Shown: positions 4,680 to 61,749, counted from the stretch's first letter. The stretch: 64,000 nucleotides of DNA from Gekko japonicus (GCF_001447785.1 NW_015169173.1:959182-1023181), one strand, 5' to 3'. Numbers and translations are program-made. Notes: generated from the sequence alone by a model not told the origin.

Positions 4680-5180
4680 GGCTTCTCGATCGGCCCGTGA
4701 CTCGAGATTTCCGGATTACTCAAACCTCCCAACGATCACAAACCCACGCGGTGCTACTGTTAGACTACTTTCGATAGCTGCCATCCCCACTAGCAGCCAA
4801 AAGGCTGATCTGTGGTGGGAGGAGTGGCTGTCACTCACCCGTTCACCACGAAGAACGGGTCCTCCAGAGACACCGCTGACCGATCGAGTCAGTCTCCCCG
4901 AGTCGCCTTCAGGAAGAGAGCGCCAGTCCGGTCAGCCGGGCACGGAGAGGACTAGCCACACGTATGGGGAAAGCGTCGCATGCTTTCCTCTCCCGCCCCA
5001 CACTGAAGCCTCCCAGGCGGCCACTTTTACTGTGGGCGCCTCTTCCCGAATCTGATCGGACTTTCCCCGCCCGTCTTCCAAAGTGGAACCGGCCTTTCCT
5101 AAAGGGAGGAGCCAGACGAGGGGAGGAAGGAAAGCACCCTGGATTTAGCTGGTTAGAGGGAATCCCCGGAATGTCTGCTG
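4680..5180 (-). promoter_or_regulatory. CpG-island promoter of STX10
   Basis: CpG-rich, with GC boxes (CCCGCCC near 4992 and 5066) and GGAA motifs directly upstream of STX10 exon 1. Confidence 0.65.
4839..4873 (-). pseudogene. STX10: STX10 (syntaxin-10) coding exon 1 with the start codon changed to GTG; the rest of the gene lies left of the window
   Basis: Minus strand reads GTG TCT CTG GAG GAC CCG TTC TTC GTG GTG AAC GG|gtgagt, i.e. (M>V)SLEDPFFVVNG, a 35-nt exon with a canonical donor. There is an in-frame TGA upstream at 4889-4891. It lies head-to-head with IER2 as in mammals. Confidence 0.82.
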
Positions 5181-8100
5181 GTTTGGGTGGGTGTGTTGGG
5201 GGGGGGGAGCTCGTTTCTTTCCACTCCTCCCCCATTCAGCTTCCTGGAAATGGAAAATGCGTCACTCATACAAAAAAAAAAACCCCGGCCCAGAATAGCA
5301 GCACATCCTCCTGGGGGTTCTCATTCATTTTTTTTCTACCTCTCTCCCACTTTTCCAAAAAAGTAGGTTTTCTTTTCTTTTAAAAAACGGATTTTCCCTA
5401 TTATTTCAATGCAAGTTTAGTGGAGGTTTTAGTTTGTCTTGCTACCCGATTCGTACGTGTGCATCTGACTGCAGCTTTAGAGGTACGTGTACGGGAAAAG
5501 TCACAGTGACAGTAGTTATATCAGGGGAATAAACGATGCACTTTATGCTTCCTATATTCTTCGCTTTACTTGGCCTTTCCTGAGTCTTAGCTTGCGGCAC
5601 CCAGATGTGCCAACTGAATGTCTCTAATAATTTAGCTTGTGAGGACGGGGGTGGAAAACACCTGCGTGGAAAGAACTAAGGGAATGCGTTCACTTGATGC
5701 CTTTAGTAGCTGAGTTCATAGCGTCTCTGTACCGCTAGTTTCACAAACAGCGCCTATAAACAAGCGGGGTGAAATGTGTTTGTTGCTCTGCCGGGGGCTA
5801 CGTCGCACGTAAGCAGCCTGTATACAAAGTATTGTGCTACCTCACCTCGCAGTGCGTGTAAACAGATCAACTTGCAAAGCAGCCGACAGTCCTTGGACCA
5901 GCTCCCGGAAGCTCAAGTAAACGCTCGTCACCTTTGCCCATGTATGGAAACAGGAAGCGAAGCCACTATCGACGTCAGCATTTTTAGAACGGCGGGTAAA
6001 TGCAATGCAACTTCGACTCCTCCCCCTGTCGTCATCGCCCAATAATATATGGAGGGAAACGGTCACCAAGGAGACTGGGGTGACCTAATAGAGGGCGGAG
6101 CCTTTTCAAAGGCAGAAGCCGGGGGGGGGGGGGGGGGGAGAGAAGCGGTAGCGGTTGAGGGTATTTCTTTCTTCTTGAGGGTCGGCTCGATGGGCGGCTC
6201 TATTTACCTTTGTACTCTGGGTGTATTGGTGAAAAGGCAGAACTGCCCTTCCATCCCGCGGGTAACAAATCACTACGAGGCTTGTCAAGGCAGACGGCCT
6301 TTATATGCGGTCCTTTGCGGCTATGTTAAGGGCGTGAACGTGCGTGCTTCAAATGTAAACTGGTGTGTGCAAATAAACACACAGCCAGGTGGGTGCGGAC
6401 GACATGATGTAATCCTAGACAGCACTTGAGCGTAAACCCCAACAAGCAGACTAGGATAGGACAATTGCGAGTCGGCATGCATAGGATCAGGCCTTGTCAG
6501 TTTTCAAACTTCTTTTAGGCCTGGCCTGAGTCAGGGTTCTGAGTAGATTTCATTAAAATTGCTGGTATTCACGCATAAAGGTACCCAGGGTTGCAGTTAC
6601 AACCTATTTGGTATCCTTTTGGTGGAAGTTGCATTGCAATTTAATTTAAACTTATAAGATGTACTAATTGTACTACTTTTATGTTTACTAGTACAATAAC
6701 AGGCAGTTTCTCCCCCTGATTTCTGAATACAAAGCAAGGCCTGAGTTAGGAATACTACTTGCAGTTTAACATGAGTTGTGGAATGTTGCATCAAGCAAAA
6801 AACAGAGGAAAGTGCACTTTAGTACAGTAAGCACTTTAGTACTAGGTTGCCAGTTCTTTGTTTCACATCCTTATCCCAGAGGCTAAAAACTTTCTGTTTT
6901 GCTCAGTACTACAAGGGAAATTTATATTTATTTTATTTATTTATTTTTCATATTTATACCCCGCCCTCCCTCATGGGCTCAGGGCGGCTAATGGTAGCTT
7001 CCTAATCTATCCCCTTAACTTTCAAGCAGCAGCAGTCCCGGGCAAATCAACTGCTAGTCCCATCTAACAGACACCCCTTTTCCCTTTTCTACCTTAATGG
7101 CAACATTGCCATGGAAGAGAAGCAGTCTGGGTACCTATGCTGTAGAGGACAGAAATCCTCTCCTCTACATCTTGCCTGTGTAGGAGCTGCTGGGGGGGGG
7201 ATGACATGACCAAAGTCTTTGGAATTTGTGTGGGGCAATGGAAGTAGTAAAGCATATCTGAACAGTAGTGCATCATTCCCAGCACACACTTGCTGTTTAT
7301 TGTGTTGTCCGGAGCCACTGAGAGTGCAAAGTGTCATGCCCTGAACAGAGAAACTTAGTTCTTGCACATGTACAAAAATGGTGTCACATACCAGAAGGAG
7401 TGGAACTGCCCTTTTCTTACACTTTGGGAAACAATTGGTATGCCTGACTTAGAAGTGAGCAGCTGGAAATTAAAACATTGCCTCAGCTCTTTGAAGAGAA
7501 AGAAGAATGCAACAATCATCATCATTTTTAATTCAAATGCCTTTTGCATTTTGATAGCTAGTAAGATTAATCAATTTTAGAAGAACTATGAAGATTGCAA
7601 GCACCAACTTTCAATCACAGAGCATAAATCTGTTTTGGGGTTCAGTCCAATTAGTAAGTAAATTTTAAATTTTATTTTGTAGTATTAAAGCATTTGAAAT
7701 GACATTCAGTGTCATACATATACAGGATGTTTATAATTTGTTTTAATAATTATCTGCATAAATACACCAGATTCGTTTTTGACTGAGAATTACAGCAGTA
7801 TCTTATGCAAAGTTATACCAGTCTAAGCCCAATGGGCTTAGAATGGAGAAACTCTGTTTAGGGCTGCATTGTTAATTGAGTTTCCAAATGTGCGGGGGGT
7901 GGGGATCACCTGATACTTATAGTTGTCAAAACAAGGAACTTCATTCTTGTCCCAGATATCTCCCCCCTCCTCAATAGTAAGCCCAAACAGGGGGATTTCT
8001 ACAAAGCAAAACTAGGAAGCTACTACATTCGTTCCCTAGCTTCGACTGACACAAATCATAGAATCATAAAACTTGGAAGGGGCCATGCAGGCCATCTAGT

Positions 8101-9796: not shown

Positions 9797-10549
9797 ATGG
9801 AAGTGCAGAAGGAAGCGCAGCGCATCATGACCATGTCGGTGTGGAAAATGTACCACTCGCGTATGCAGCGCGGCGGCCTCCGGCTCCATCGCAGCTTGCA
9901 GCTATCCCTCGTCATGCGTAACGCCCGAGACCTCTATCTCTCCGCCAAGCTGGAGGAAGAGGACGAGATGGCAGCTGGGGTCGGCCCTGGAGAAGATTTT
10001 GCCGGGCGGCAGCCGCAGCTGGACTTACAGGCGCCAAGCCCTCCACATCTGGAGGGGGCCCGAGCACCGGAGAGACTTCCGCAGGCACCGCTGGAGGCGT
10101 CTCTTCTCAGCCCGCAGCCTTTGGAGACGCCGCCGCTCCCTTCGCCTTCGGCCAGCCCCGAGCCGGAGCCCATGGAGACTCAGGAGGAGCCCAGCAGCTC
10201 GCCCGCGCCTCCCCAGTCTCGGACTAGCTGGAGCCGGGGCGCCTCAGGGCCTCCGCCGGGCGCCACCAAGCCGAGCCGCAAGCGCCGCAGCAGCAGCCTG
10301 GGCAAAATAGGCGCCGCCGAAGCCGGTCTGGTGCCCAGCAAGAAGGCGAAGCTGGTGGAAGAGGAAGGCGAGCGGCAGCCGCAGCGCCAAGAAGGGCCTT
10401 TCCCGAGCTTAGCTCGAGTCTTGCAGGACCGCTTCTCGGGCTTGATCCTCCCGCCGCAGGCGGCTAAAGGCAGCGAGGAGCCCAAGGCCAGCTGCAGGCA
10501 AGGGGACGGCGTGCTGAGCATAATGGTGAGAGCTGTGGTGGCCTTCTAG
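9797..10549 (+). CDS. IER2: Immediate early response 2, intact single-exon ORF of 250 aa
   Basis: N-terminus MEVQKEAQRIMTMSVWKMYHSRMQRGGLRLHRSLQLSLVMRNARDLYL, basic NLS-like motifs RKRR and PSKKAK, and C-terminus VRAVVAF, all diagnostic of IER2. Confidence 0.97.
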   Translation: MEVQKEAQRIMTMSVWKMYHSRMQRGGLRLHRSLQLSLVMRNARDLYLSAKLEEEDEMAAGVGPGEDFAGRQPQLDLQAPSPPHLEGARAPERLPQAPLEASLLSPQPLETPPLPSPSASPEPEPMETQEEPSSSPAPPQSRTSWSRGASGPPPGATKPSRKRRSSSLGKIGAAEAGLVPSKKAKLVEEEGERQPQRQEGPFPSLARVLQDRFSGLILPPQAAKGSEEPKASCRQGDGVLSIMVRAVVAF

Positions 10550-12214
10550 AGCGCCCCCGCCAGGAACTCGTAGCCGGAAACTTCTCGCTCCAGAGAAGCG
10601 GAGCCTGCGGAAGCCCCTCTTGGGTGACAGAGGAGCTGAACACCGCCTCCCACACCCGGCCCAGCGGCCCCCAGCTCCTCGGTGGCGGGGCCTTGGCGGT
10701 CCGGAAGGCGCGCAGCGGGAGGCTGGTGACGGTTGGGGGGTGGCGGGGGAGCCCAGGCGGGTCCCTCCTCCTTTCCCCGCCCGGTGGGGATAGGCGAGAG
10801 ACACTCTGGTGGCTGGGGGAGCGGGCGACGCAAAAGCAAAAGCCTGCGGGAGAGGGAGCGACGCTTGCCGAAGGAGGCCCCAACTCGGCCGGCGAGCCCG
10901 GGACGCAGCTGTGTTCTTTGAGGGACTGGCCGCGCCAATGCGGGCGTCGGCGTTAGGAGGAGCTGAAATGACTTGACTTTGGGAGAGGGGGACGCTCCGG
11001 GGAAATGAGAGAGACTTTTGAAATACGTGGGATCATTCCGACTGATTCCAGACGGTTGACTCATGTGGAAAGCAACCACTATCTGTACGCTTTTTGTGTG
11101 TGCTAGTCAATAACAATGACGTCCTTATCCTGCCTTTTGAAAAAGTTGTTGCCTCTTCTGGTCCCCCACCGCCGACCAATTCTCTCTTGAATGGGATTAA
11201 AGGGAGGGGGAGTTCAGGATTCTGGGGCAGCTCCCCTGAAGGGTTAAAAAGTCTTGCTGGGAGTTGTTGAAGAAAGGCAGCTTTTGTCAGTCCCGCTCCT
11301 ATCTGGTGTGTGTGTGGGGGGGAGAGATCTACCCAGCATTCTTTTCCTCAGGGCCATCCCTTTTTTTTTTTCCTTACCTAATAATGAAGGATGATGAAGT
11401 GGCCTGTTTCTTTGTGCCAGAGAAGATTTCAAAACCAGATTAGTTTTGCCGGTTTGTGTATGATGAGAGCAGAAACAGAAGGGGGGGGGACATCCAACCG
11501 GTCTTACTAGTTATGACTCATCTCTCATATGACTAGCATTTGCATTACACTGGGTCCAAGAGTGCAGGGGATTTCCTGCTTATGAACTGCCTTAGCTTTG
11601 TGTTTGTTTTTTTAAAAGGTGTGGGTAGAACCCTGAATGACTGTGTGTATGGGGGGGGGGTTAAAGTACAAATATTAAAGGCTTACTGGCAACTTTCCCG
11701 GATGCCTGAAGCTGTTGAGATATACATTGAACAGTGGTGGGCATTGCTGTTTTTACATAAACAGAATGTTTTCCTCTCGAGATTATCAAATTGGACATTT
11801 CTCACTCAGAGAGAATGAGATTGGTGGTGTTTTGGCATCATTTCATTTTTTTATAAATAAAAGTAGTCATTCTGTGAAATTCCAAGACATATTTTCTCCC
11901 TTTGCTGATTGCAGTATTTCTTCCACTTGGTCTATTGTGAAATGCTGCTTGTTGTCCTGTGTGAGTTTAATATAAATGCTTCCCAAGTGTGTGTTTAATG
12001 CAAACTCTTGGCCTAAGTGCTGGGAATGTTCATGAAACACTGTTTTGTTTCAAAACTGGCGAAATTGGTGTCTGTCAAGGTACTCTGTAATGCTGCCTTT
12101 ATATCTTCAAGGTTTTGTCACTTGTGTTTATTTTCTATTTTTTGAAATGGGGGGGATACAGGCTTCTTCGGTTCTGTTTTTCACCCTCATGGTGTAAATA
12201 ATTTTGATCACTGA

Positions 12215-12220
12215 AATAAA
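12215..12220 (+). terminator. Probable IER2 polyadenylation signal
   Basis: AATAAA at the end of a long U-rich 3'UTR, followed by T/GT-rich sequence. A second AATAAA near 11856 is an alternative. Confidence 0.5.
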
Positions 12221-12764
12221 GGCCATCTGAATTTTTTAATTTCCCGTGGTGCTTCATTCTTGATCATTTTAAATTTTAAAATGTGTACATAGAGGGTTAT
12301 CACCCTTAGTGGATGTGAAAGAGGGGAATGTTCAAACACTTCCTGGGTCCCATCAGTTACGCCTCCTACATTAAGAACTGTTGATGTTCAGAGGTTAAGG
12401 AAATGAAGAACCAAAGGGGCCTGAAGAAACAGCAAGGTAGTGGCAGGAAAGAACAGCATCTTCTAAGGGCCAGAATTCCAAGTGTCTTCACTACACAGTG
12501 AATTGGATACAAATCTGAACTTAACTCCCATCTCCAATAACTCAATTTTGTGCTCTTAAAAACCAGCCCAGAAGGCCTGTATGACCTTGATTGGTGCACT
12601 AGACTTCTAGTGCAGCCAGAACTAAATCATGTTCCTTGTTATGTGGCTGTTTCCAAGAGTGGATGGAGGCAAGGATGAGCAAGTGTTGCCTTGCTTAAGC
12701 TAGGTAGTTATTCCTGTTTGGCTTTTAGGCTATCACTTTTCGGATGTCTCTCTGCCAGGTACCA

Positions 12765-14255
12765 GAATTTTATTATGTATATAGCCAAAGGCCATCACAG
12801 TACAGAATTAGGATAGTAAAAAGAAAATAATTCTAATCGTATATAGGTAAAACAGCAATTAAAAGGAATTTTCATACAAATAAATATGGACCAGTTATAA
12901 ACAGTAAATTTTTTAAATGATAAATCCAGTTAGTCATAAAAAGGTTAATTTTCTGAAGTTGCAGTCTTAGCCCTGATTTTTTGGGCAGCCAAGGCAAAAA
13001 GAGACACTTTATAACTGATGAGCGGATCAGTGTCAGATAATAGAAAGACCAGCTTGTCAATGTCAGAGGAAATTTTTTGCCCTATTAGCAGATTATCAAG
13101 ACATTTAGATCTAACTGCTGTATACATAGGACAAAATAGTGTGTAGTGAAGAATGTCCTCTGGAACTGAAGTACCACATATACAAGAACGTAAGGCCAGT
13201 GGTATTTGAGAGTATCTCCCCGTGAGTAGAGCTGTTGGCATAGTCTGAAAATGTAAGGAAGTGCCTATCTGAGATTTTGAGATGTAATATTCACTAAGTA
13301 AGGAGATCTATCATGATCTCTTCTGAATAACTTAAACCAAGGGGAGAATTTAGACCTAGAGATGGTAAACCTGTCCAATAAAGTGTCACATTTGTAGATC
13401 GTTTCTTAAGTTGGTACCAATATTGAGAGCCCCCAACAAATTGTCTGGAATAGAATAGTAGGCAAGTATGTTCTTATAACATGTAGACCAGGATGTGTCT
13501 CTACATGACATTAGTTGAAGGCATTGTTTGCTAAATATGTTGGTGAGGGCAGTATTACCTTTATTCCAGGATCTGAGTAAAGCAAGGTGGATGCGAGCCC
13601 TAACTTAGGGCATACCAAGTTCTGCCCTCATTAGGGCTGCAGGGGTCCCCTTGGGCAGGGCAAGAAGTCGTCTTAATGAATAAGTTTTGAATTGATTCCA
13701 GGCTGGAGATTAGTCCTTCAAGCCCCAGACCTCTACACCATAAAGAAGGTGGGGGATTGCCTTGTGAGTAAATAATTTTACTGCGGGGTCTACAAGGAAT
13801 CCACCTTTGGTGTGATAAAATCTCAGAATTGCTCCTTCTTTTTTTTTTTGTAGAAGCTTTAACAGTATCCAGATGTATTTTCCAATTTAAGGTCTCACTA
13901 AAGGTCACTCCCAAATATTTAAAAGAGCTGCATTGCTCAATAGCTATTCCATGAATACTCCAAGCAAACTTTCCGGGGTGTTTTCTAAAGACCATAACCT
14001 TGGTCTTGTTATAGATTATATTAAGAGCCTCCTCTTTACAGTATTCACCAAGTTGGTGTAGCAGCCTTTTTAATCCAATTTGAGTAAGAAATAAAAACCA
14101 TGTCATCAGCGTATAATAAAATTGAGATCTTCTGATGACCAAACAAGGAAGCAACAAACTTGGGTCCTGAGAGCTTGTGAACTATATAATTTATGTACAG
14201 GTTGAAAAGCAAGGGGGCAAGAATACATCCCTGCTTAACCCCCCCTACAGATTTC
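12765..14255 (-). mobile_element. 5'-truncated degenerate non-LTR retrotransposon (RT plus C-terminal CCHC; RTE-X-like, clade uncertain)
   Basis: RT motifs GVKQGCILAPLLFNLYIN, LLYADDMV and FKYLGVTF. C-terminal CICG...EDILHYTLFCPMY. The 3' end has AATAAA. Several frameshifts. Confidence 0.85.
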
Positions 14256-16029
14256 TGCCAGGTAGTTTGGCTAAACGACTGAGTTGCATAACAATGTGTG
14301 GCTTCAGGAGGGGCATGAGAGTACAGGCAGTTTATATTTAGAGCTGCAGTAACAGAGCTTGTAAACTTGTTTATGATGAACGAAAATAGCATTTCTATAA
14401 ACATGGGCTACTAGCCAGCTGGACAGTACTGGCAGGCAGGAGCTTGGATATGAGTGCTTTGCAAAACGTTAGTAGCTGCGGTGTCTCAAAGGTAATCTCC
14501 TAAGTGAGCATCTTATGCTTGTCTGCAGTTCTCGGATCATGCAGTGGAAACATTATGGGTTTGTTGGCACAATACAGTTTTGTCAAAAAATTGGTTCCCA
14601 CAGGGGCTGTGTACCAGCACAATTTTTTAAACAATATATTTATTGATTTTTAAATGACATACAGACAAAAGAAAAAACACAGACAGACAAACATACAATG
14701 TAGAATATCACCAATATTTTAAACACATCAAGGTCTCATAGGGGTAACAATACATTAATCCTATCTACTCACCCATATTCTACTCTTTACATAATTACAT
14801 AATATTACATTACTCCCCATAATATTATATACCACCACAAATTTTCACAGGTTATGAAGGTCCCCTCAATAGAAATTTTTCATGAAAGAACATATATGTT
14901 CCAATACGTTCCATTTGGATGATACTTGATTTGATTAATTGCTGGCCAACAGAATAAACCTTTGGTTATAATTCCAGCATGATTTTTTTTGTCATTTCAA
15001 AATGTAGTCAGGCATATCATGAGACTGAAGAACTGATTTCAGATTGTTTAGACAATTATGCATATTACTGAAGATTGGGAATAAAGTGCTTCTCAATAGT
15101 CATGAATGCAAAGGAGCCCCTCCAATAATTCAGTAACTTTAGGATTCATGATTTTGGGGAAAGTCTAACATTTAACTTCTTACTCATTTTAAAAAGTGCA
15201 CCAAAGGATTTGACAAAGAGGGAATGAAAGTATATGCCACTAATGTTGTTGCACCTTGGACTCTCTCATTCTGGTTTACAGTAGTTCTGTGAGACAGCTG
15301 GGAGAGAACTGAAATTGATGTTGAATGGGCCCCTAGGGCTAAAAGAGCTCTTCTGTGATTCAGTGCTCAGGAATTCACTTGTAACCTGAGCTGCAGCCAC
15401 TTTAAAGGTCATAAACTGGTAATTTTCCCTTCTCCACAATCTAGTTACCTCCTCCCTAGCTGATTTTATGAAATTAGTTCTTTAGCTGGTGTGAAGTTCT
15501 TAAGGTTTCTGTTCAAGGCATAGCAAACAACCTAAGCTTTTTCGTTCTGCAAAGTCTGGAATTACCATCACTGTTAGTAGAGACTGGAATCTCTGGCCTA
15601 GTTTTCCTCTAAAGTGGTAAAGTTGTGTCTAGGCACTTCACATTGCAGGTAGATGCTCACAGGAATTTTTTAAAAACTTCCATATAGAAATGTAGATATT
15701 GCAGAGAATGATTCTAACCTAGCTTTCTCTGTGTCATTAGTTTCCATATGAAGAATTTTTTAAATTTTGTATGGAGGTTTGTTCAGACTGAAGTCATATA
15801 GCCAAGGCCTAAATTTCCCACCAAGTGACAACTAGGAATCAGCTTCAGCCCAACCCTATTTCTTCCCACACAAAACCTGCTCCACCCCTATCAATGAGTC
15901 AGCTGGAAAGTCACTCTTGGTCACAGCTTGGTTGCTCTGATACTAACACCAGAGCTATTATGCTACAAAGAACCATGACCTACTTTTCTACAAGAGCCAA
16001 GCTTTCTGTACAAATGGAAATAGATCAAG

Positions 16030-16200
16030 ATGGGTAGCCATGTTTGTCTAGCAGTTGAACAGAGTAAGAGTCCAGTAGTACCTTAAAGACTAACAAAATG
16101 TGCGGTCGTATAAGAGCTTTTGTGAGTCACTGCTCACTTCAGATAGTGAAGAAGTGAGCAATGACTCACAAAAGCTCATACCCTACCACGGATTTTGTAC
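16030..16200. mobile_element. Penelope-like terminal repeat fragments in inverted arrangement
   Basis: GAGTCCAGTAGTACCTTAAAGACTAACAAAAT motif, followed by an imperfect palindrome TGTGAGTCACTGCTCACTTC...GAAGTGAGCAATGACTCACA. Related copies lie at about 17765-17870, 41470-41660 and 48930-49015. Confidence 0.55.
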
Positions 16201-19200
16201 AAATGGAAGAACAAGATACTATTCCACTTTGGGGGCTTTGGCTCCTGCTGAATGTAAAATTTTCCCTCCTGTAACATACAGTAGAAATGCTAAACAGAAT
16301 TGGAAATAGCTAGATAGGATTAAAGACGCCACACCCATATACCCATAGGCTTTTACTGTTCCTTTCAGCCAGAGTTCTTGGAAGGCCCTACACATTCTCG
16401 TGCACAGGGCTGCTTTGAATTTACAAAGGGAAGAAAAATCTCCCTTTGGGGCAAGTTAGAACAAGATAGCTTTCAGAGTTGGCAGGGCTTTGCAGGTGGT
16501 CTCTTATACATCTGCCCCAAAACCACAAAAAAATAAAATCAAATTCTGCCTCCCACAAACAACCTTTATGTCTGAACCAAACATGAGATTATGTAAAAGT
16601 TTAAATCTGGCAGAGACCTGAATCGTATCTTTTCCCTCTTGGAACACTTTGAAGTTCTGTAACCTCTTGAGCAGAGCTTTTGTAATATGCTGTATACTTC
16701 AAGAGACTGTTGTCTGTGTTAAGAGTTTTAAATCCATACAGTGGGGAAAGACAGAATCCATCTGTAACCTCTTCACATCTGAAATGGGGGAGGGAGCTGA
16801 GAGTCTTTTGGAAGCTTTTTGTTTTTTAAGCAGGAAATAACAGTGAAACATTCAAAAAAATTTTTAAAAAGCAACAAAACAGTCTGAAATGCTACCAAAT
16901 TTGAGATCAAATGATGAAGATGCACTGAACACACACAGCTTTTTTTTAAAAAAAGTGCAGGTGAAGGATCCAGTCCTTCCCATACCCACTCACCTTACTG
17001 CATGCTATTGTTTCATCACTTCTTCTAGCCCAGCTCAATTAACAGTATGGAAGCTGAGCTGGAAGAAAATGCTGAAAACATCTAAGCATACTGATGTAAA
17101 TCTGGGTAGGATTTCTCTCATCTGCATTTTTCACTGCAGTCTAAAGGGGGGGGGGGAGATAACAGATCTTGGAAGCCTGAATCCTTTTTCACTAACATCG
17201 GTGGAATCAAGAAATTATATTGCTTATTCCTGTGCATCCCATGGTTTTATCTTCACACATGCTGTGATAGAATAAATAACTAGAGCCAAGAGTTATTCTT
17301 GAAGCCACTAACCAGGGGAAGAATGCGTATAAACTCCTTTGCTCAAGGTCAAGGGTCCAGCTTGCTTTTTGAGCATGCATAAACCTTGTTCTGCCAGATT
17401 ATTAAACAAGCTGCAAGGCATTTCGTTCTAGCCCAGGCTGATGCAAGCTTTCTTCATTGCTCTGTGTTATTTTAAAAATCCTCTTCTCTGCTAGTCAGAA
17501 GGCATTTTGAGCCTGTGGAATATACATTAGACCATCCTAAACTAGGTTTTGAGGTGAGTTGAGACTTTAAAAACGAATAGCTTTATATATCTTTGCTGAC
17601 ACCCACCCAATGCCCAGTAAACTTGAGAGGAGTATACATGTCAGAGAAAACACTTCTGCACTAAATGCCTTGTGTTTGAGGAGACAGTGCAGGTTCAAGC
17701 GGAGTGATGGAGGAAATACTATCTATATCCACATTTCACCACTATTATGTAAAATAGCTTCAGAAAGGAGCCATGTTGGTCTGCAACAGAACAGCTAGAT
17801 TGCAGTCCTGTAGCATCTTAGAGACCAACAAGATTTTTGGGGTATGAGCTTTCAAGAGTCAAAGCTGCCTCCTCAAACGTAGTATGGCCACATCGTAGCC
17901 CTCTAGCCTTATGATCTTCCATAAAGTGCAGGATGTTTCAGTTAACAAGCACATTTTTTAAAAACCCTGTTTGCTACATTACACTATAGTATATTCTTTA
18001 TGGTGTTTGAATTCCAGAGTTTCTGCCCTCTTTAACCTTCCTGTCCTGCTGCTTTGTGGGAAACCCCCAGAAAACCCACACTATCCTGCATTGCACCTAG
18101 AGCCTGTCACAGCATTCATCACCTGTGCAAGACACTCCCCTTGTGAATAGACAGAAGGGTCTTTGATAATGCCCCAATCACATCTCCAGCAGAACAAAGG
18201 CAGCATGGCTAATGGCTCCCACTCAAAGTGTGATTCTCTCCCTCCACACATGCACATACAAAAGGCAATCTGAAGGATAGAAAAAAACACCAAAGCCAGG
18301 ATATGGGGGTTGCAGAGCAAGGAAGGCTTCACACACCAAATGCAGAGAGGTTGGTTTCCTGTGCATCGCCTACCCCTGGAGACAGGATACCAAAGCGGAC
18401 AGCCTGTTCCGCCTTACCATGAGCCAGGCTGTATCCGGCATCTGCTGAAGTTCCTGTGTTCTCACCAGTGAGGGCAGAAGAGCAGGGAGGGGGCAGCACC
18501 ATGGGACTATGTGCCTCCAGTCAGAAGAGATTCTTGTCCCAGTGGCCACAGCTCTCCCCCCACCCACCCATGCATGTAGTTCCACTGGGTAACAAAATAT
18601 TTATAAGTGGCATGGAACTTTCATTTTCTCCCTTTTGGTTTCAAGGAATTTCTCTTCTGTTCAGTGAGAAGCAGAATGAAAAGCAGCTTCCTAGTTCCTG
18701 GATACTCAGTGCAGTGTATTCCATGACAAAGACAACAATCGTAATCAAGCTCACTAGGAAGCAAGCCCTATTGAACTAAATGGGACTTGCTTCTGAGTGA
18801 ACATGCTTTGTATTGTGCTGAAAATGTCACAACACCAAAAGTAGCAGTAACTGAATAAAATATACAGGAAGGGCATGCAGGCCTATTTACAACAGCCACA
18901 AGCCATCACATCTAAATATGCACACACTTTTATAGGTATAGCCTAGTACCAACCCTGGACATCAGGGCTGTATTCTCAGCTTTGGAGAAGAGACTCTTCC
19001 AGGTTACAAAGATGGCAAGACGGACAGCAGACAGCCTGATTGGAAGCTTAGGTGAGAAATATGGGATCAACTGGAGTTGTGCAAGTTTGTATGTTTGTTT
19101 CATTTGGAGTGTGATTTTGCTCTGCCCAGCTTCCCTTAGCCTGGGTTCTCCATCAGTGGCAGTCCCTTGGCAGTCACTTCATGTCCTGCCACACTGCTGG

Positions 19201-19740
19201 TGCAGGATGGAATCCCACGATTACTACACCCCTTATGAGACAACCTCATTAAAGTGCTCCAACCTGGACAATTATGGGACACGCCTCAGAATAATTAGCA
19301 CCCATGGGAAACTGCTTTGCAGACAGGCTGCATACACTAACAGCTAGAGCAGGTTATTCTAGAAGCCAGAACTCCTAAAGCTTCCCCCTCCCAACCTGCT
19401 TTCCCACTCATTAGTGAAGAAGGAAACAAAAACCCAGGCAGAGTCATGACATTTTTTAGGAACACAGACTTCATGTCACATGACCTTTTTGAACCTTGAG
19501 TTCTCTGCCTCTAACCATTCAGCACAGAGGGGAAAACAGGACCTCCCAGATATTTCAAAGCCAAAGATCTCCTGTAGCAAGTGAACAATCCCTCCTTCGA
19601 TCCTGCTACATGCTCTACAGCATGAATAATAAGAGCTTATGTATACAGCAAAATAATCTCTGAATGAAAAAAAATGGCCTGAATGGGGAGAGTCCATACA
19701 CAGTCATTTTGCCTTCCCCATATTTCTTAATTTCTTGGAG

Positions 19741-20352
19741 AACAATAAGGTTTCCCCCCGCCCCCTTATAATTCATATACACTTTATCACAGAGGCAGTC
19801 ACTTGTGCACTTTGATTGTGGACTACCACAGCCTCCGTTTAAATATTCCTGGCCATTTTAACCCTTCCATTTTTTAAGGAAACAATAGGATTATTGTGAT
19901 TTCCATTTTTGTCACAAAATGGAAAGGCTGATATTCCATATCCTGCACTCATATAACCAAAGCTAACGTTCTTATCTGGCCTCATGTAGCACTTGTAAGG
20001 AACACCAGATCACGTTTGACTCACAACTGTCTGAAAATCAATTCTCCTTGGAATTGTCAGTTTATGTCCATGAAGTGGAGTTACACTCTCAGTTCTGGAT
20101 GACTTCACTGTAAGAAATGGGAAACTTGGGTGCAAACAGGGTCACTTCTCCATTTTGATTCTGCTTTTCAGACAACAGTGAGACAGCAATTAGTCTTTTT
20201 GAACCAGTCTCCTATCTAAGGGAAACTTGGATTCTGTCCTTACCTGCCTTTCCCTTCTTCCCCTGGAGTCACTATTAGGGTAGGGGGAGAAGGGAAAAAC
20301 GTAGAAAACAATAAGGTTTCCCCCCCGCCCCCTTATAATTCATATACACTTT
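19741..20352. repeat. 45-46 bp direct repeat (19741-19785 and 20307-20352) enclosing about 520 bp of unique sequence
   Basis: AACAATAAGGTTTCCCCCCGCCCCCTTATAATTCATATACACTTT occurs twice and differs only in the length of the C run. Confidence 0.9.
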
Positions 20353-21796: not shown

Positions 21797-22118
21797 TAGG
21801 GTTGCCAAGTGGCACTTACCCTTCCGGCGGGGGACTCCAGGTCGGCTCCCGGCGCATGTGCGCGCCGCATGCACGTCACAGGGAAGTGACGTCATGACGC
21901 CGGGCACGCTGGGGGCGGGGCCACGACCATACAAGGGAAAACCAGTTTTCCCTTGTATGGCCGTGGCCCCGCCCCGAGCGTGCCCGGCATCATGACGTCA
22001 CTTCCCTGTGACGTGCATGCTGGGGCTGGGTTCCCCCCGGGGCCCGATTCCCCGGCGTCGGGGAACGAGCCTCTGGGGTGGGAGGTTTTCCACCCCCCGG
22101 GGGGATTTGGCAGCCCTA
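21797..22118. mobile_element. hAT-like MITE with a large internal palindrome
   Basis: Terminal inverted repeats TAGGGTTGCCAA...TTGGCAGCCCTA. Near-perfect hairpin at 21867-22020. Confidence 0.8.
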
Positions 22119-22249
22119 TCCTGTGAACCATAAAAGGAGTATGTGTGTTTGCATAAATCAATTAAGGTGAGTGCTTGTCTGTTATGTACAAGGACCGCCA
22201 CCAGGGGTCCGTGGCTAAAGCAGGAGCTTGGTCCCCAAACACTTTTCAT

Positions 22250-45736: not shown

Positions 45737-48772
<3,036 letters not shown>

Positions 48773-52423: not shown

Positions 52424-55400
52424 TCACACAGGGAGTCTCCAGACCTCCAAAGATAGACCACCTGAGGCAGCAACAGCTATGTTCCCTGCAACGCTGACCT
52501 GCAAAAGAAAAGGAGAGGGAAAGTGGGTGCGTAATTAGTCCAGCAGATGGTGCTAATCTCACTGAAGTCACATATACTTGGGTGCCTAACCTCACAGGAA
52601 AAAGGTCGCTGCAGATGCTTCCGCCCACAACCTCCTCCGATTCTAAGTGCTCCCTGGTTCCCAGGTAGGGCTCTAACAGCATTGCTATTCCCCATCCAAT
52701 TGTTCTTACCCCACTTAGCATGCAACTGTGCGTCCGTGAACAGATAGCCTTTGGTGGATCTGTGGGAATATGGATCTGGGAAGAGAAAGTCAAAGGATCC
52801 AGGGCTTGAAGCTGGAAGACTGACAGGAATAGGTTACTTTATCATAGGAAATACAAAGACAGAAACGGGGGAAACAGCAGATGAGTCCCCCATCACAAAA
52901 GGGCTGAGCCAGGGCAACTAGGACAGAGCTCAGCTCCATAAAAGGGTACGAGACTGATGAAGACACGGAGTATACTCTGAAGGCATCAGCCTGTAAACAG
53001 GGACAAGGAAGCCAGCTTAAGGTGGCCCTTGCTCTCCTTCATGATTTCCATTTTAAGCCATTAGTCCTCACTCTCCTTTCACAATTCACAACTGAGCCAA
53101 GGGCCATCCTTCTTGCTGTACAAAGTTGAGAAGGACAATAATGAAATTAAGCGTTGCTCCAGCACATACATGATGAGAAGGTACCCTGGACCTAAGCCTG
53201 TCTACGGGTCACAGATCCGTAACTTAGGGACAACGCTTACACGCAGTGTCTTGTCCGTGGAAGCTGTGTACAGAGCGCCCAGTGAGTATTGGACTCCAGT
53301 GATCTGAGAACGATGGCCAACATCAAAGTGCTGCAGAGAGAAGAAACAGTGAGGCACTGAATGTGCCAAGGCAGCCAACACAAGCACGCTTGCCTCACCT
53401 TACTGAACCTGCACTGTCCATAGCAAGGTCCTTTCATTTTGAGGAAACAGCTTTCTAGTTTAGTTCTAGCTTCTGTTGCGGCTGGCAAAACAAAACTACC
53501 CCAACTGTTCAAAACTCATGATATTTCTACTCTGAATCTTAGAAGTGTTCTGAAATACAGCTACAATCAACTTCAAGCAGTATATTATCTACACTTACGG
53601 AGGCACAACTTACTTTGTGGGTGGCAATGACAAGCCTACCATCCTTCCCTGCCTCCCAGAGATCCACGTTCTCCCAGCATACCCTTACGTGCTGAAAGCT
53701 GTCCCCTCGGTTTTGAAACACATACAGCAGTCCATAGTTGTCTCCAGCCCACAGCTGACAACCCTGGTATGACATGCTGAGGAGATAGGAGTCCAGCTAG
53801 GGAAGAAAATAAACTGATGTCACTGCCAAAAGTAGGAATAACGAAGGTGTACCAAATATCTGCAGGTAATTTAGTAAAGCAATGAGATCAAGCCACACAA
53901 AGTAAATGATGCTCAGAAATGCCTGCCAATATGAACTTGGGGAAATCCTGACACTAAAAATGACAACCAGCATGATTCTGAAGAAAATGGAAGACCTTCT
54001 CTCTACAGGGGACAATACTCAGAATAGGGAACAGATGGGTGAGAGCACAAGTAAATACTACTACACGTATTCTTTTTGGCCAAACCGCAGCTGCAGTGCC
54101 TTTGAACAATACAAACAACAGCTGCCAAGCTGGACACAATAGAGACGGAGCTTTGTCTTATGATACAACCCTTCCACAAGCTCAGAAGTAATCCAATCAG
54201 GGTGGTAGCTAGCATGGGGCGCACAGGGCGATGCCCCCTCCTGAATTCTCAATGCCCCCCAGCCCAAAGATCCTTGCCGCTTGCAGACTCATAGACAGAG
54301 GGGGTGGCAGGGACTAGCAGGGGACACCCTGCTTCCCTTATGGGAGCCTAGTGGCCGCTGCCTTTCAACACAGCTTGGCGCGCACACCCCGCCCTGTCAG
54401 GAAGGAGGGAGGCCAGGCACAAGTGGCATGCTGGCGGGGGGGGGGGGGGGGGGGGGGCGTACTCGCTCTCCTCACTGTCGGGCACCTCCCTTCTTCTTTC
54501 TACCCCACCCCCTCCATCCAGTGTCCCCCAAAAACTTGTCTAGCTATGGGGCTGAATCCAACATCCAAATTTAGAAAGGAAAGCCAAAAATTCTCATTAC
54601 AAATTCAAGAGAAAACATGCACAAACTGGGCTCTCTCCCATGGAATGTTTGGAATGTTTGGCTATTCAAGAGAAAACATGCACAAACTGGGCTCACTCCC
54701 ATGGAATGTTTGGCTGTCCTCATTAGGAAAATGAGACTCCTAGATCTCTCACACACCTGCAGCCTCTGGAGGACACTGTTGGCCCGTCTGTCAAAAAACA
54801 CTACTGTCCGATCCTCACTGCCAGAGATGATGAAGCGCTCGTCAGCTGCAAGGGACAGGACTGCACTGGAATGGAGCTTGCGGCTCTTTACGAGGGGTTG
54901 AGAAGCTGTAGGAGAGGGTCCAAGGGACACATCACAAGAGCACAGTCACTGACAACAGAGCTTCACAAAACTAATGGCTTGATCAGCTGACACCTCACAC
55001 ATGGTCTCTCCCTAGCGGGTCACAGTACTCCAGTTGACATCACGTTCTTTTCACTGGGAAGCAACCACAAGCAGAAGAGAGGATAGAGCTTCCTCTGGGT
55101 GAACTTTGGCGAGCTCTTCCCAACTAATCTGGGGCTAGCCTACTGTCATACAATAGACATTGTTACCTTTTCCTAGCCCAAGCAAGCGCACTTAAGAGCC
55201 ACTGTCTTCCCACATTAAATTTCCTACTTAAGAAAGCAGTGTGATAGGGTTGAATGCCAACTATGCACATTGTCTTAATGCAAAAGGACCTGGCTGGAAG
55301 GGACACACCTCTGCCTTTTCTAACCATCTGTGTTTGTCTTTCTCCTTCCCATTGAAGAAATAAATAGCTTCTCTCTATACCCTCAGCTGCATCAGCTACT

Positions 55401-58400
55401 TGCAACTGAGCCTGTGTTTACCAAGCTCCTAATTCAAGCTGGGCAGATTTTGTGTTCAATCTTAACTGACTGAAGGGAATGGGTGGATGGGGAGGGGGAA
55501 TGAAAGGGACAGAAAGTAAAAGGACAACACAAGGAGAAAACACACCGTGGAGTTCCTTTCCAAGATATCGAATGAAAGGCACTGAAACAAGGTTGTGACA
55601 GATCAGGGCACCAGTACCACTGACAACAGATGGCACTAACCTCGTGGGTCATATACTGTCACCTTCTTGTCATAGGTTCCTGTGACAAGGATGTCAGGCA
55701 GGTAAGAAAGGCACAACACAGCTGCTTTCCCTCTAGGATGAGAAGGAAAAATCAGGTGAAGGCACAGAATGCCCACTTTAAAGTCAACAAACCTCTGCTC
55801 AGCCACAGTTCTGCTTGTCGTGGATTACAAGGCTAGTGCCCTACGGGTGTCAGCTCGAGCAAAAGCCTTAATGTCTCTCAATATTGCCTGAGAACCCAGA
55901 ATACTGAGATGGGTCCCTTTATTCAGTGGAGCATGCAGCAAAATTCCAGGTTCTGCCGTTCTTATTTTAGATCCCCCAAGTACAACCCTCAGGAAAAGTT
56001 GCTAGGGCAACATTACCTGATTTCTCCGAACTGCTGCCCATCAGCAGCTATGTCCCAAAGCTTCACTGTACTGTCCCAGGAGCCTGAGCACACCCGGTTG
56101 TCTCTCGTAGCCAGCGACCAGACCCATCCCTAACAGCAAAAGAGTTAAGATCTACGTCAGCACTCTCTCCAACTCTTTAGAAGCAACACAATCTCATTCC
56201 AGTGGCACACAAAAAAAACACGTGGCCATTCCTTTCACCTACATCTTATTAACAGTAACTGCTCTAAAGCCGGGAATAGTTCCACATAATATGAACAGAC
56301 CTAGTGCTGACAGCCACCATGATGCAGTGGTTACGGTACTGCAGGGACCAGGGGCTCAAGGCCATGAAGCTCACAGGGTGCCCCCTGGGCCAGCCACACA
56401 TTCACAGCCTGACCTACCACACAGGGCTGTTATAAGGACAAAACAGAGGAGAGAAGAACCATGNNNNNNNNNNNNNNNNNNNNNNNNNNNNNNNNNNNNN
56501 NNNNNNNNNNNNNNNNNNNNNNNNNNNNNNNNNNNNNNNNNNNNNNNNNNNNNNNNNNNNNNNNNNNNNNNNNNNNNNNNNNNNNNNNNNNNNNNNNNNN
56601 NNNNNNNNNNNNNNNNNNNNNNNNNNNNNNNNNNNNNNNNNNNNNNNNNNNNNNNNNNNNNNNNNNNNNNNNNNNNNNNNNNNNNNNNNNNNNNNNNNNN
56701 NNNNNNNNNNNNNNNNNNNNNNNNNNNNNNNNNNNNNNNNNNNNNNNNNNNNNNNNNNNNNNNNNNNNNNNNNNNNNNNNNNNNNNNNNNNNNNNNNNNN
56801 NNNNNNNNNNNNNNNNNNNNNNNNNNNNNNNNNNNNNNNNNNNNNNNNNNNNNNNNNNNNNNNNNNNNNNNNNNNNNNNNNNNNNNNNNNNNNNNNNNNN
56901 NNNNNNNNNNNNNNNNNNNNNNNNNNNNNNNNNNNNNNNNNNNNNNNNNNNNNNNNNNNNNNNNNNNNNNNNNNNNNNNNNNNNNNNNNNNNNNNNNNNN
57001 NNNNNNNNNNNNNNNNNNNNNNNNNNNNNNNNNNNNNNNNNNNNNNNNNNNNNNNNNNNNNNNNNNNNNNNNNNNNNNNNNNNNNNNNNNNNNNNNNNNN
57101 NNCATGCAGTGATGCATACATCTGCACAGTTCATTTTGAATGCAGTATCTGGAATAACTGAGCAAAGAACTCAGGGTGTTAAGCAGCAAGGAAAGGAGTC
57201 ATGGGTGCAGTATAGGCAAGAGCAGAAAGAGCTCTGCAGGACACAGCTGAATCTTCGACAGTTGCTAACCGGAAAACTTTTATTTTCTTTTTATTTTATT
57301 TATTTATTTATTGTTCGATTTATATCCCGCCCTCCCCAGAACGGGCTCAGAGCGGCTAACAATTAGGGCACAAAGCCAAGATTAAAACAGGGCACGAAGC
57401 CATGATTAAAACACTAAAAACAATAAAACAATCCACTAATACATAAAGTGCAGGTGCTCTAGATGTCGCTACAGTCTTCTAGGTGTCACTTCAATCCTCA
57501 ATTCCAAGATGGGTTCTGGCAAAATAAGCCCAGAACAACAGCGTAAGTTCCGTAACAACACTGCCATCCAATCTTTGTCCCAGGGCCGTCTTGCACCTCG
57601 GTGGTACTCACACCATTTATGGTGGCGGTGCGATGGTGGTACAGTGGCAGCAGCGGCTCCTACTCAAAAGCCTGGCGGAAGAGCTCCATCTTGCACGCCA
57701 TGCGGAACTGCGCAAGGTCCCACAGGGCCCGGATCTCCTCCGGGAACTCATTCCACCAGGTAGGAGCCGCCACCAAAAAGGCCCTGGCCCTGGTCGCAGC
57801 GAATTTGATATCTCTGGGGTCTGGGGTCACCAAAAGATGTTGGGCCCCCAACCGTAGTGCCCTTGGGGGAACATATGGGGAAAGGTGGTCCCTTAGATTT
57901 GCCAGACCCTGGCCATGTAGGGCTTTAAAGGTAAGACCCAGCACTTTGAAGCAGATCCGTACGCTATTGGCAGCCAGTGCAGTGCTTTCAGCACAGGCCG
58001 GATATGGTCCCCCCTAGAGAGACCCATCAACAGCCTGGCTGCCGCATTCTGCACTAGCTGCAGCTTCCAGATTAGCGACAAAGACAGCCCCATGTAGAGA
58101 GTGTTACAGTAGTCCAACCTCGAGGTGACCGTCGTATGGATCACTGTGGCCAGGTCTTCGCGGTCAAGGAAGGGGACCAACTGCTGTGCCAGCCGAAGAT
58201 GGTAGAAGGCCGACTTGGCAGTGGCTGCTACCTAGGCCTCCATCGTTAAAGAGGAGTCCAGGAGCACACCCAAACTCCTAACCCCCAAGACTGGCACCAG
58301 AGGTGCCCCATCAACGGTCAGGACGGAGAGGGAGCCCCAACCCCGAACCAACCCAAGCCCAGGACCTCCGTCTTCGCCGGGTTTAGTTTCAGCCGACTCA

Positions 58401-61400
58401 GTCTGAGCAAACCAGCCACAGCTTGCAATGCCCGATGAAGGTCATCTGGGTCAGAGTTTGACCAGCCGCCCAGCATCAGATAGAGCTGGGTGTCATCCTC
58501 ATATTGATGACACCCAAGCCCATAACTCCAGGCAATCTGGGCAAGGGGGCGCATGTAGATGTTAAACAACATCGGGGACAGCACCGCCCCCTGAGGCACC
58601 CCACAATCAAGAGGGCGCCTCTGGGACCGCTGATCCCCTATCACCCCCCTTTGTCCCCGGCCTTGAAGAAAAGAGGCAAACCACTGTAGGGCAAGCCCCT
58701 GAATCCTGTCAGCGAGGTGGTGGGTCAGCAACTGGTGGTTCGCCATATCAAATGTGGCCAACAGATCTAACAACAACAGTGCTGCCACACCATCTCAATC
58801 CAGATGCATTCGGAAGTTGTCAGTCAGGGCAACCAACGCCGCCTCCGCCCCGTGACCTGGGCGAAAGCTGGAATGGAAAGGATCTAGGACTGAAGCATCC
58901 TCCAGAAAGCCCTGTAGCTGTATCGCCACCGCCCTCTCGATAAGTTTGCCCAAATAGGGCAAATTGGACACCGGCCGATAGTTGGCCAATTCAGCCAGGT
59001 CCAGAGATGGTTTTTTCAAGAGAGGGCGGACCATCACTTCCTTGAGTGCTCCGGGGAACCACCCCTCTGAAAGGGACGTTGATAATCTCCCGCAAAGCAA
59101 CTCGAAGCCCATCGTGGCCTGCCTTAATAAGCCAGGATGAGCACGGATCAAGGTTGCACATGGTTGGACGTACAGATACGAGCAATCTGTCAACTTTGTC
59201 CAGGCTGAGTAGGCCGAAACGCTCTAAACCCGAAGCCGAAGACGTGCAAGGGGCCTCGAGTTCGCTCACTGTTTCAATTGTGGTGGGGAGGTCATGGCGG
59301 AGCACCATGACTTTATCTACAAAATAGCTTGCAAATGCCTCACAGCCAATGTCCAATTCCCTAACGTTTTGCCTGCCCTGTGGCAGAGCTGTCAAAGACC
59401 GGATCGTTCTAAACAATTGGGCTGGGCATGAGCTCGCAGATGCAATCTCGGCTGCATAGAACTCCCTCTTTGCGGCCTTGACTGCCATCTCATAGGATCT
59501 CATAAGCGTCCTATAAGATGCTCTTGACGCCTCGTCACGAGCACGACACCACCGTCTCTCTAGCCATCTCAGTTCTTGCTTCAGATGCCGCAACTCCTGG
59601 GTATACCAGGGTGCTCGCCGAGTGCGAAGAGGGCACCTGGGAGCGATCTCGTCAATGGCTGTGGAGAGCCGACCATGCCAGTCCTCCACCAGCTCATCCA
59701 ACGAGCCGCCAGGGGGCCTCGGATCCCACAGGGCCATCTGGAACCACACAGGGTCCATTTGGCTCCATGGGCAAGCAAAAATCCACTCGCCGCCTACACA
59801 GGGTTGGGGTGGGACATTCAGGTGGGCCTTCAGTCCCTGGTGGTCCGACCATGGCACTGCATCCGCAGTGATCCGGTCCACCATCACCCCCACCACGAAG
59901 ATCATATCAAGCATGTGACCGGCCCGATGCGTGGGAGGCGATACAAGTTGAGAGAGTCCCAGCGCCGCCATGGACGACACTAGGTCCGTAGCCCAGCTGA
60001 AGGTCGCGTCCTCGGCATGGACGCTGAAATCCCCCAACACAATAAGCCTTGGGTGCTCCAACGCCCAGCCTGATATGGCCTCCAGCATGGACGGCAAGCT
60101 ATTGGCCGGTGCGGTAGGCGGTCGATACACTAGCCAAATCGCCAAACTCTCCTCAGCCTCCAGCATCAAGCTGACACATTCCACGCCCGCGATCTCCACG
60201 GACGGAGGCGCCCGGAAGGAGTAAGCCTCCCAAATGAAAATCGCCACTCCCCCCCCCCCCCCCTCACCCCCCACGATTGGTGGAGGACCGAGAAACCCGG
60301 TGGGGCAAGCTGGGTAAGAGCTACCGTCTCCCCATGCCGCACCCAGCTCTCGGTCACGCACGCCAGGTCTGCCTGTTGTTCCATCACAAAATCCCAAAGG
60401 ATTGTGGTCTTGTTGTTAATGGACCTGACGTTGGACAGCACCAATGACGGAGCGGGGTTTTCACTCCTGGCCCCACTGCCGGCCACCCTTGGGATGGGGC
60501 GTAGGCTGGAAGGGTGCTAAGCCATTCTGTTTCTCCACGTCCTTCCCTTACTTTTCAAACTGACTGCAGCAAGCTCAAAGTCTGGCAGTTTTTTAAAGGC
60601 AGTCACTGCACCCTGCTCACCATCAGTGTTCCCTCTAAGCTGAGTTAGTGTGAGCTAGCTCACAGTTTTTTAGCTTCCAGCTCACAAATTTTTGTCTTAG
60701 CTCAGGAAGGATGGCTCCAGCGCAAAGTAATTGATGCAGTAGCCAAACCGCTTGCTCACAGCTTTAATGCCGGTAGCTCACAAAGTAGAATTTTTGTTCA
60801 CAAGATCCCACAGCTTAGAGGGAACATTGCTCACCATGTAGAACAACACATCTTAAAGGTGAGAGCATCAGCCCTCTATTCCAAAAGAAATTGAATGGTC
60901 CTATGGCAAGTCCGATCTCGTCAGATCCCAGAAGCTAAGCAGGGCTGACCCTGGGAAGTACTTGGATGGAAGACCTCCAAGGAATACCAGGGCCAGGACA
61001 CAGAGGCAGGCAATAGCAGGCAAAAGCCACCTCTCGGAAACGTCCAAGCCCGACTAGGGGTCGCCGGAAGTCAACCATGACTTCCAGGCACATAAAAAAA
61101 ATACAAAAAGAAGGAAGGAAGGAAGGAAGGAAGGAAGGAAGGAAGGAAGGAAGGAAGGAAGGAAGGAAGGAAGGAAACACAGTGGGTTAGAACAAGAATC
61201 TCTACTGTCAGTCTGACTGGTTTAATTCTGGAAAAAAGGCCCCTTCCATGCAAATTACCACAGAGATATTTTCACAAACCCAAAGGCAGCAGCATTCAGG
61301 CTCTTGACTGGCCACATACTCATGGAAGGACATATGTCAAAAAGTAATATTGCACTACTACAGCAGCACAGAAATTTAGCAGCTTTTACCTGAAGGAGGA

Positions 61401-61529
61401 GGACAGAGTCAACTGAAGCAAAGTGCCCATCAGCTAGCGAAAAGTACTCTGTATTCTTGCCATCCTCTGCCCATTGCTGGAGATGTTCCTCTAGTTCAAT
61501 GCAAGCAGCTGGCCAGTTAAAGTCATCAT
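52424..61529 (-). CDS. FBXW9: FBXW9, partial. Visible exons 61390-61529, 56017-56129, 55641-55732, 54757-54905, 53683-53796, 53241-53330, 52710-52775, 52424-52498. Exon 1 is beyond the window and exon 3 is not seen (probably in the N gap)
   Basis: Translates [14 protein letters not shown]...VDSVLLLQ; [26 protein letters not shown]; [26 protein letters not shown]; [25 protein letters not shown]; [11 protein letters not shown]; ...[12 protein letters not shown]. All splice sites are canonical and phases are consistent. Confidence 0.92.
56464..57101. other. Assembly gap
   Basis: Run of N. Confidence 1.
57280..60540 (-). mobile_element. Near full-length ORF2 of a degenerate L2-clade LINE in an FBXW9 intron
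   Basis: APE endonuclease ([29 protein letters not shown]) and RT ([42 protein letters not shown]), then SRLDYCN and a 3' (AATA)n tail. Multiple frameshifts. Confidence 0.93.
60624..60829. mobile_element. hAT MITE with an 8-bp target-site duplication
   Basis: TIRs CAGTGTTCCCTCTAAGCTG...CAGCTTAGAGGGAACATTG, flanked by CTCACCAT on both sides. Confidence 0.9.
60902..61105 (+). mobile_element. 5S rRNA-derived SINE with a LINE-like tail
   Basis: CCGATCTCGTCAGATCCCAGAAGCTAAGCAGGG...GTACTTGGATGGAAGACC...GGAATACC matches the 5S internal control region. It is followed by a non-5S tail and an A-rich end. Confidence 0.8.
61109..61176 (+). repeat. (GGAA)n microsatellite
   Basis: Perfect GAAG/GGAA array following the SINE tail. 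Confidence 0.97.
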
Positions 61530-61749
61530 CTACAGAGACATGGATGGGGCATAAAGGAATCCATATTTTCCTTTAGGCTATGCAGGACAATCTCAAGCAA
61601 TGCAAGCAAATTTTGTTTATAGTGGTTATGCACAAGTATTCTCAGAGTATACAGTAGATATGCACAAGTATTCTCAAAGCCATTTACAAAGAAAAAAAGT
61701 AACACAACTGATCTATCTAGTTTCCTAAAATGACAGGAACATGTCTTAG

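Follow-up and report, generated by a model that had tools for sequence, protein, structure and literature searches.

The genome of the gecko Gekko japonicus is already known to contain genes that have decayed in place: the opsin genes RH1 and SWS2 have become pseudogenes, in which start codons are mutated and exons have been lost or shifted (PMC4673495). In a second gecko, Sphaerodactylus townsendi, linkage group LG3, which has synteny to chicken chromosomes 18, 30 and 33, is the XY pair (bioRxiv 10.1101/2021.08.13.456260), as an earlier sequence-only reading of the DNA described here had stated. Also relevant are the recent pseudogenes that belong to segmental duplicates and the frameshifts and missing exons that arise as errors in short-read draft assemblies, which NCBI labels 'LOW QUALITY PROTEIN'. 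This report deals with 64,000 nucleotides of G. japonicus DNA (GCF_001447785.1, NW_015169173.1:959182-1023181; "the window" means this whole stretch), in which the genes WDR83OS and WDR83 and the first exon of STX10 carry six disabling lesions. Our tentative reading, possible rather than probable, is that the lesions are real mutations on one of two versions of the locus, i.e., a young decaying duplicate or haplotype.

The six lesions are independent of one another and of four kinds: key sites are hit by a point change in two places, a single nucleotide is inserted in two others, 8 nt are deleted in another, and one exon is missing. They are present in STX10, WDR83OS and WDR83 as the sequence-only reading described them, and all are in assembled letters. 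That reading counted three of six genes as decayed; three genes are indeed lesioned, but they form two units, the WDR83OS/WDR83 pair and the first exon of STX10. The window contains two runs of N. The first (24809-24877) is intergenic, 2.7 kb past the WDR83OS stop codon, and the second (56464-57102) is within FBXW9 and may conceal FBXW9 exons. Both are more than 2.6 kb from WDR83OS, and no lesion adjoins either one. The exception to the otherwise clean surroundings of the lesions is WDR83OS exon 1, which is in a GC-rich island with C runs.

The locus is like the RH1 and SWS2 pseudogenes in that the damage is in place in the G. japonicus genome and includes a changed start codon and a lost exon (PMC4673495). 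However, the opsin losses are old, are explained by nocturnality and are accompanied by strong divergence, whereas the genes affected here are housekeeping genes whose remaining exons are almost unchanged. There is also a likeness to a recent segmental-duplicate pseudogene: introns, splice sites and promoter are kept, the lesions are few and young, and a gene pair has been hit as a unit. Unlike such a pseudogene, the decaying copy is in the ancestral synteny, that is, in the position of the parent and not of the daughter, and a second copy is absent from the protein annotation.

The window is part of a 2.5-Mb G. japonicus scaffold (2,497,706 bp), on which IER2 and WDR83 proteins are on record. 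The scaffold comes from the V1.1 draft, which was made from an adult male from Nantong, China, with 131x Illumina sequence assembled by SOAPdenovo and SSPACE (PMC4673495). A chromosome-level assembly of a female, made with PacBio and Hi-C, has also been published (PMC10776941). All coordinates given here were read directly from the letters of the window, and the exons were compared one by one, with no joined spliced model in any search.

WDR83 (34768-41221, plus strand) has nine coding exons, all of which are in order when compared by tblastn with the 316-amino-acid Sceloporus protein (P0014) that served as the reference; residues were compared across 23 references. Exons 1 to 4 (34768-34870, 35396-35516, 36772-36877 and 37534-37579) are in frame and flanked by GT and AG. 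Exon 5 (37677-37803), which is 87% identical to residues 124-169 of human WDR83 (PDB 9s2f), terminates in ACA GG at 37803, and the phase of this ending is set by the exon 6 acceptor, after which come one base and then TCT GTA GAT. The donor that follows is AT (37804-37805), with A at the +1 position (37804) where G is expected. Reading through into intron 5 leads immediately to a TAA. Every acceptor of the gene is AG, and the exon 5 donor is the only one that is not GT. The first GT downstream of it, at a distance of about 10 nt, was considered as a rescue and rejected; its use still includes the TAA in frame.

Exons 6 and 7 (39206-39273 and 39646-39753) are intact. Exon 8 (40025-40131) is 107 nt long instead of the expected 115, because 8 nt are gone at 40070/40071 and the codons for S-E-R are reduced to a single A at 40071. 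Where the references have L-S-E-R-D, the gecko sequence has CTG, A and GAT, and the altered frame leads to a premature TGA at 40095-40097. Sceloporus residues 229-243 and 247-266 consequently match exon 8 in two different frames. Around exons 7 and 8 there is no other acceptor or donor close by whose use would restore the frame. Exon 9 (41009-41221) is open and has a tail extending about 22 amino acids beyond the references.

Besides the two disabling lesions, WDR83 has one in-frame change. Exon 4 lacks a codon that all 23 references have, and it encodes E-E-A-M-I-L in place of E-E-A-T-V-I-L.

The NCBI model of WDR83 at this locus (isoform X2, P0006) is truncated to 182 amino acids. By tblastn it is 100% identical to the window at exon 4 and at exon 6 with the adjoining intron, and identity is lower only across junctions. 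The model omits the true first coding exon and begins in an upstream exon (33921-33965); it then reads exon 2 (35396-35499) in the wrong frame, regains the frame via an internal GT and ends in intron 6. This shape looks forced by the lesions. The model also splices exon 5 to exon 6 precisely at the AT-AG junction. If transcripts underlie that junction, a GT-bearing version of the gene was probably their source.

WDR83OS, which encodes Asterix, lies on the minus strand and is damaged at its 5' end. Its first exon (33699-33750) is followed by a GT donor after 33699, and its frame is broken. The first ATG is at 33750-33748, and an additional C at 33735 stands directly before a second ATG (33734-33732). 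In the frame of the second ATG, the codons for MADPRRP are followed at once by CCC-TAA, with an additional T at 33713 and the TAA at 33713-33711. Neither ATG reaches the end of the exon in the correct phase. We count the two bases as extra in relation to what we take to be the human N-terminus.

Motif scans that covered the whole window on both strands revealed no trace of WDR83OS exon 2, which should encode approximately residues 18-52. The 5.3-kb intron in which it would be expected (28418-33698, minus strand) has no N gap, and its stop-free pieces, read by eye, include no exon 2. Skipping of exon 2 was also considered as a rescue, and it is out of frame from either ATG. The two remaining exons are intact. 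Exon 3 (28320-28417) has an AG acceptor and a GT donor and matches residues 50-85 of human Asterix at 35 of 36 positions (E 1.3e-18), with a Pfam ASTER match at E 5.6e-16; exon 4 (27572-27638) covers ASTER profile positions 78-95 and ends in a stop codon.

Between the two genes is a bidirectional CpG-island promoter (33400-34100), where the observed/expected CpG ratio is 0.91, rising to 0.94 in the core (33600-33900). The background ratio in the window is 0.14-0.15. A CpG island is also present at the 5' end of STX10 (4600-5200; GC content 0.57, CpG ratio 0.70). The statement of the sequence-only reading that the genes keep their introns and promoters is therefore borne out, with splice sites and CpG islands retained.

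The exon that we take to be the first of STX10 (4839-4873, minus strand) begins with GTG (4873-4871) in place of the expected ATG. It reads GTG TCT CTG GAG GAC CCG TTC TTC GTG GTG AAC GG and is followed by a GTGAGT donor. Since a TGA is in frame six codons upstream of the GTG (4891-4889), there is no in-frame ATG. Exon 1, a stop-free piece of 17 amino acids, is the part of the gene that lies in the window, the remainder being outside it. The assignment to STX10 comes from the motif SLEDPFFVV and from the head-to-head arrangement with IER2, both of which we presume to be typical of that gene; a text search for the N-terminal motif of STX6/STX10 found no paper.

The first intron of STX10 contains a Gypsy-like element (1269-4290, minus strand), with short repeats resembling long terminal repeats at 1269-1331 and 4228-4290 (89% identity). 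A Gag-like open reading frame (ORF; 1837-3102) with a SCAN domain and a CCHC zinc knuckle has directly downstream of it a stop-free piece (1315-1833) that encodes a KH domain (Pfam KH-I_KHDC4-BBP and KH_1).

How old the damage is can be judged from what remains of the coding sequence. WDR83 is identical to the Sceloporus protein at 261 of 304 residues (86%). Compared with the 23 references, which include no other gecko, it has 18 private residues, of which about 9-10 are at otherwise invariant columns; two of these ten are alignment effects of the one-codon deletion in exon 4. The corresponding counts of private residues and changes at invariant columns for other lone, deep lineages are 21 and 7 for alligator, 19 and 8 for platypus, 28 and 11 for mouse, and 23 and 10 for coelacanth. 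The number of private changes in the gecko protein is within the range of working orthologues, and a working gene compared without another gecko would show as many. WDR83 and WDR83OS thus have the disabling lesions and the retained intron-exon structure of a non-processed pseudogene, and the remaining coding sequence of the two genes does not have the relaxed constraint of one.

The lesions would be young, because conservation of WDR83 is normal, exon 3 of WDR83OS is nearly unchanged and its exon 4 intact, and the splice sites and CpG islands are kept. The sequence-only reading likewise called the decay recent, and this agrees with the conservation of what is left of the coding sequence, which equals that of working orthologues. 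On this evidence the damage would be very recent, or not fixed (specific to one copy or haplotype), or artefactual. If it is recent or not fixed, one would expect the genome or the population to have a working copy or allele in another place.

We infer such a second, working version of the locus. One version, either a recently duplicated copy of the WDR83OS-WDR83 pair or one of its haplotypes, would be undergoing non-functionalisation, and the other version would work; the start codon of STX10 would have been lost separately. From the lesioned WDR83, intron 5 would not be spliced normally, with the +1 G of the donor now an A, and even a correctly spliced message would have the exon 8 frameshift and so would lack the last propeller blades. 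The lesioned WDR83OS would make no Asterix, with exon 1 out of frame and exon 2 absent. None of this requires sex linkage, and the degenerating sex chromosome that the sequence-only reading put forward is no more likely than its own alternative, a segmental duplicate in decay.

Several results weigh against the idea of two versions. A search with the Sceloporus protein as the query found no full-length G. japonicus WDR83 among the best clusters. When the truncated gecko model was the query, no second G. japonicus WDR83 appeared, and the best non-self matches, from turtle and boa, were 85-86% identical. For neither IER2 nor WDR83 is there a recorded second G. japonicus protein with an identity of at least 90%, and the clusters of IER2 and of the truncated model (P0006) have a single member each. 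The annotation therefore shows neither an intact WDR83 nor a near-identical second IER2. A functional copy elsewhere, which the sequence-only reading said should exist, is still expected from the conservation of the genes, but none was found among the annotated G. japonicus proteins. The predicted loss of the STX10 start is, moreover, read from a single short exon. As to the partner block, a separately assembled one is not evident, and an annotation would not reveal a haplotype that had been collapsed. Transcript-derived proteins were also considered as evidence for an intact mRNA; they proved uninformative, with even IER2 having no Logan-derived entry for G. japonicus.

The alternative that some or all of the lesions are errors of the 2015 SOAPdenovo/SSPACE assembly, produced by misassembly, gap closing or misjoined repeats, with the genes intact in the animal, is only slightly less likely than our reading. 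The draft was built from short reads and has N gaps, and outside the lesions everything looks like working genes. The missing exon 2 of WDR83OS and both of its 1-nt insertions are in or beside the GC-rich island with its long runs of C, and the NCBI model of WDR83 splices exactly over the supposedly dead donor. The locus also resembles the known errors of short-read drafts in its indels, its missing exon and its truncated annotation. However, six errors of four kinds within 36 kb are far above what is usual for a 131x Illumina consensus, and none of the six adjoins a gap. Two of the six simply replace a base that is critical for function, in the start codon and at the +1 position of a donor, and these two are unlikely to be consensus errors because of the 131x Illumina coverage. 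Unlike typical draft errors, the substitutions are clean ones and the lesions are clustered in two neighboring loci, while IER2, GNG14 and the remaining exons of the window are clean. It is improbable that WDR83, WDR83OS and STX10 have truly been lost in G. japonicus, as single-copy unitary pseudogenes whose fixation is very recent. In favor of such a loss, some mammals can do without STX10, which is not known from mouse and rat, and the G. japonicus records include the truncated NCBI model of WDR83 and no full-length protein. The RH1 and SWS2 opsins provide a documented precedent for in-place pseudogenes in this genome (PMC4673495). However, both WDR83OS, whose product Asterix is a subunit of the PAT complex, and WDR83 (MORG1) show conservation throughout the vertebrates, and the near-perfect remaining exons and CpG islands would need three nearly simultaneous and extremely recent losses. 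Loss of WDR83OS or WDR83 is, in addition, expected to be harmful.

Similarly improbable, in our view, is the explanation that the window represents a degenerating Y haplotype, or one that is otherwise non-recombining, in a young sex-linked region, with the intact X allele collapsed by the assembler. The sequenced animal was male, the lesions are young, and several linked loss-of-function changes within 36 kb, in genes presumed to be essential, are compatible with a haplotype that is shielded from recombination. Heteromorphic sex chromosomes have been reported in a Japanese population of G. japonicus, but a Nanjing population is reported to lack them, and the Chinese animals have temperature-dependent sex determination (PMC9026794); the literature names no linkage group for sex in this species. 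The exons of IER2, GNG14 and FBXW9 within the block carry no damage, neither IER2 nor WDR83 has a recorded partner copy, and the scaffold is 2.5 Mb long. The window has two transposable element insertions (the Gypsy-like element and a long interspersed nuclear element, LINE), few internal repeats and no ampliconic structure. The block-wide decay or accumulation of repeats that such a haplotype might display was not seen within the window, where the genes are clean apart from the lesioned ones and the CpG islands are intact.

The comparison with LG3 of S. townsendi bears on the same explanation. The homologous linkage group (Gallus 18/30/33) is the XY pair there, and the G. japonicus window is like it in having linked losses with introns and promoters kept in a male animal. 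The two would share an ancestral linkage group if the block maps to chicken chromosome 30, a statement of the sequence-only reading that we treat as an assumption. However, the two geckos are in different families, and turnover of gecko sex chromosomes is frequent; the G. japonicus locus also differs in its clean neighbors and the lack of a partner copy, and G. japonicus is known mainly for temperature-dependent sex determination. That G. japonicus carries a cryptic young non-recombining haplotype, Y-linked or sheltered by an inversion, on the XY linkage group of S. townsendi, with the first housekeeping genes being disabled, is a long shot.

What the lesions mean differs among these explanations. 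Real lesions that are confined to one haplotype would point to a region of suppressed recombination, which might be sex-linked, in a gecko with a disputed mode of sex determination; two of them, the change of the donor from G to A and the loss of 8 nt in exon 8, could then be used directly as markers for the polymerase chain reaction. If they are in a decaying duplicate, the locus would be an ordinary case of non-functionalisation. If they are assembly errors, they would be a caution against inferring gene loss from the 2015 G. japonicus draft, in which the WDR83 model is already truncated.

The window as a whole is the ancestral-synteny locus STX10 / IER2 ... WDR83OS / WDR83 / GNG14 / FBXW9. 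IER2 adjoins the 3' end of WDR83OS, and the gene order at 10550-27570 and at 41222-45736 departs from what we take to be the human 19p13 order, in which MAN2B1 and DHPS presumably belong to the block; no reference was at hand for this comparison. By eye, no remnants of MAN2B1 were seen between IER2 and the WDR83OS 3' end and none of DHPS between WDR83 and GNG14, which is a weak negative as no reference sequence was used.

The genes that flank the lesioned ones are in good order. IER2 (9797-10549, plus strand) is an intact single-exon ORF of 250 codons with a Pfam IER match (E 2.5e-18), and the FBXW9-like exons described below are all open, which agrees with the sequence-only reading that IER2 and the visible FBXW9 exons are intact. 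Between IER2 and the 3' end of WDR83OS is a 3-kb CpG-rich stretch (22000-25300; GC content 0.55, CpG ratio 0.5), which includes the first N gap and a repeat of about 200 bp with 73% identity between its copies (22913-23113 and 23817-24023). No coding exons were recognised in this stretch.

GNG14 (45737-45829 and 47355-47480, plus strand) is also intact. It encodes 72 amino acids with a Pfam G-gamma match and ends in C-T-I-A, and an ATTAAA polyadenylation signal is at 47485, five bases past the stop codon. The sequence-only reading listed two changes in this gene beside the lesions of the others, and neither is a lesion. The first is an N residue (47409-47411) where alignment to PDB chains of Ggamma2 shows the D of DPLL; this is a conservative substitution. 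The second is a repeat of the 3' segment of the gene, a tandem copy at 47871-48772 (plus strand) that aligns by blastn with 46688-47628, with 26 mismatches (2.9%) and a 39-nt gap. The last exon in the second copy is degenerate, having a 39-nt in-frame deletion and NSF in place of NPF, and it has no Pfam match. The repeat is a real, moderately old duplication that lies downstream of the intact gene.

Six open WD40 exons on the minus strand (53205-53399, 53542-53796, 54574-54945, 55639-55824, 56016-56129 and 61258-61572) have weak WD40 matches, and we take them to belong to FBXW9 by synteny only. They are broken up by the second N gap and by a LINE at 57.6-60.4 kb. The LINE (57600-60415, minus strand) is in an FBXW9 intron, beside that gap, and has a 474-codon stop-free piece resembling an endonuclease and reverse transcriptase (58994-60415) and further reverse transcriptase pieces; it may be a fairly young insertion.

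An FBXW9 intron also contains a match to 5S rRNA (60894-60998, plus strand), which scores 38.9 bits against an Rfam gathering score of 38 and is adjoined by a (GAAG)n run at 61110-61176. This match is probably a short interspersed nuclear element derived from 5S rRNA and not a gene. Finally, on the strand opposite to FBXW9, the segment at 62139-63671 (plus strand) has four long stop-free pieces of 107-146 amino acids in shifting frames. They match no Pfam family and have no Atlas look-alike, and the segment may represent one large exon with frameshifts, a repeat or nothing more than chance.

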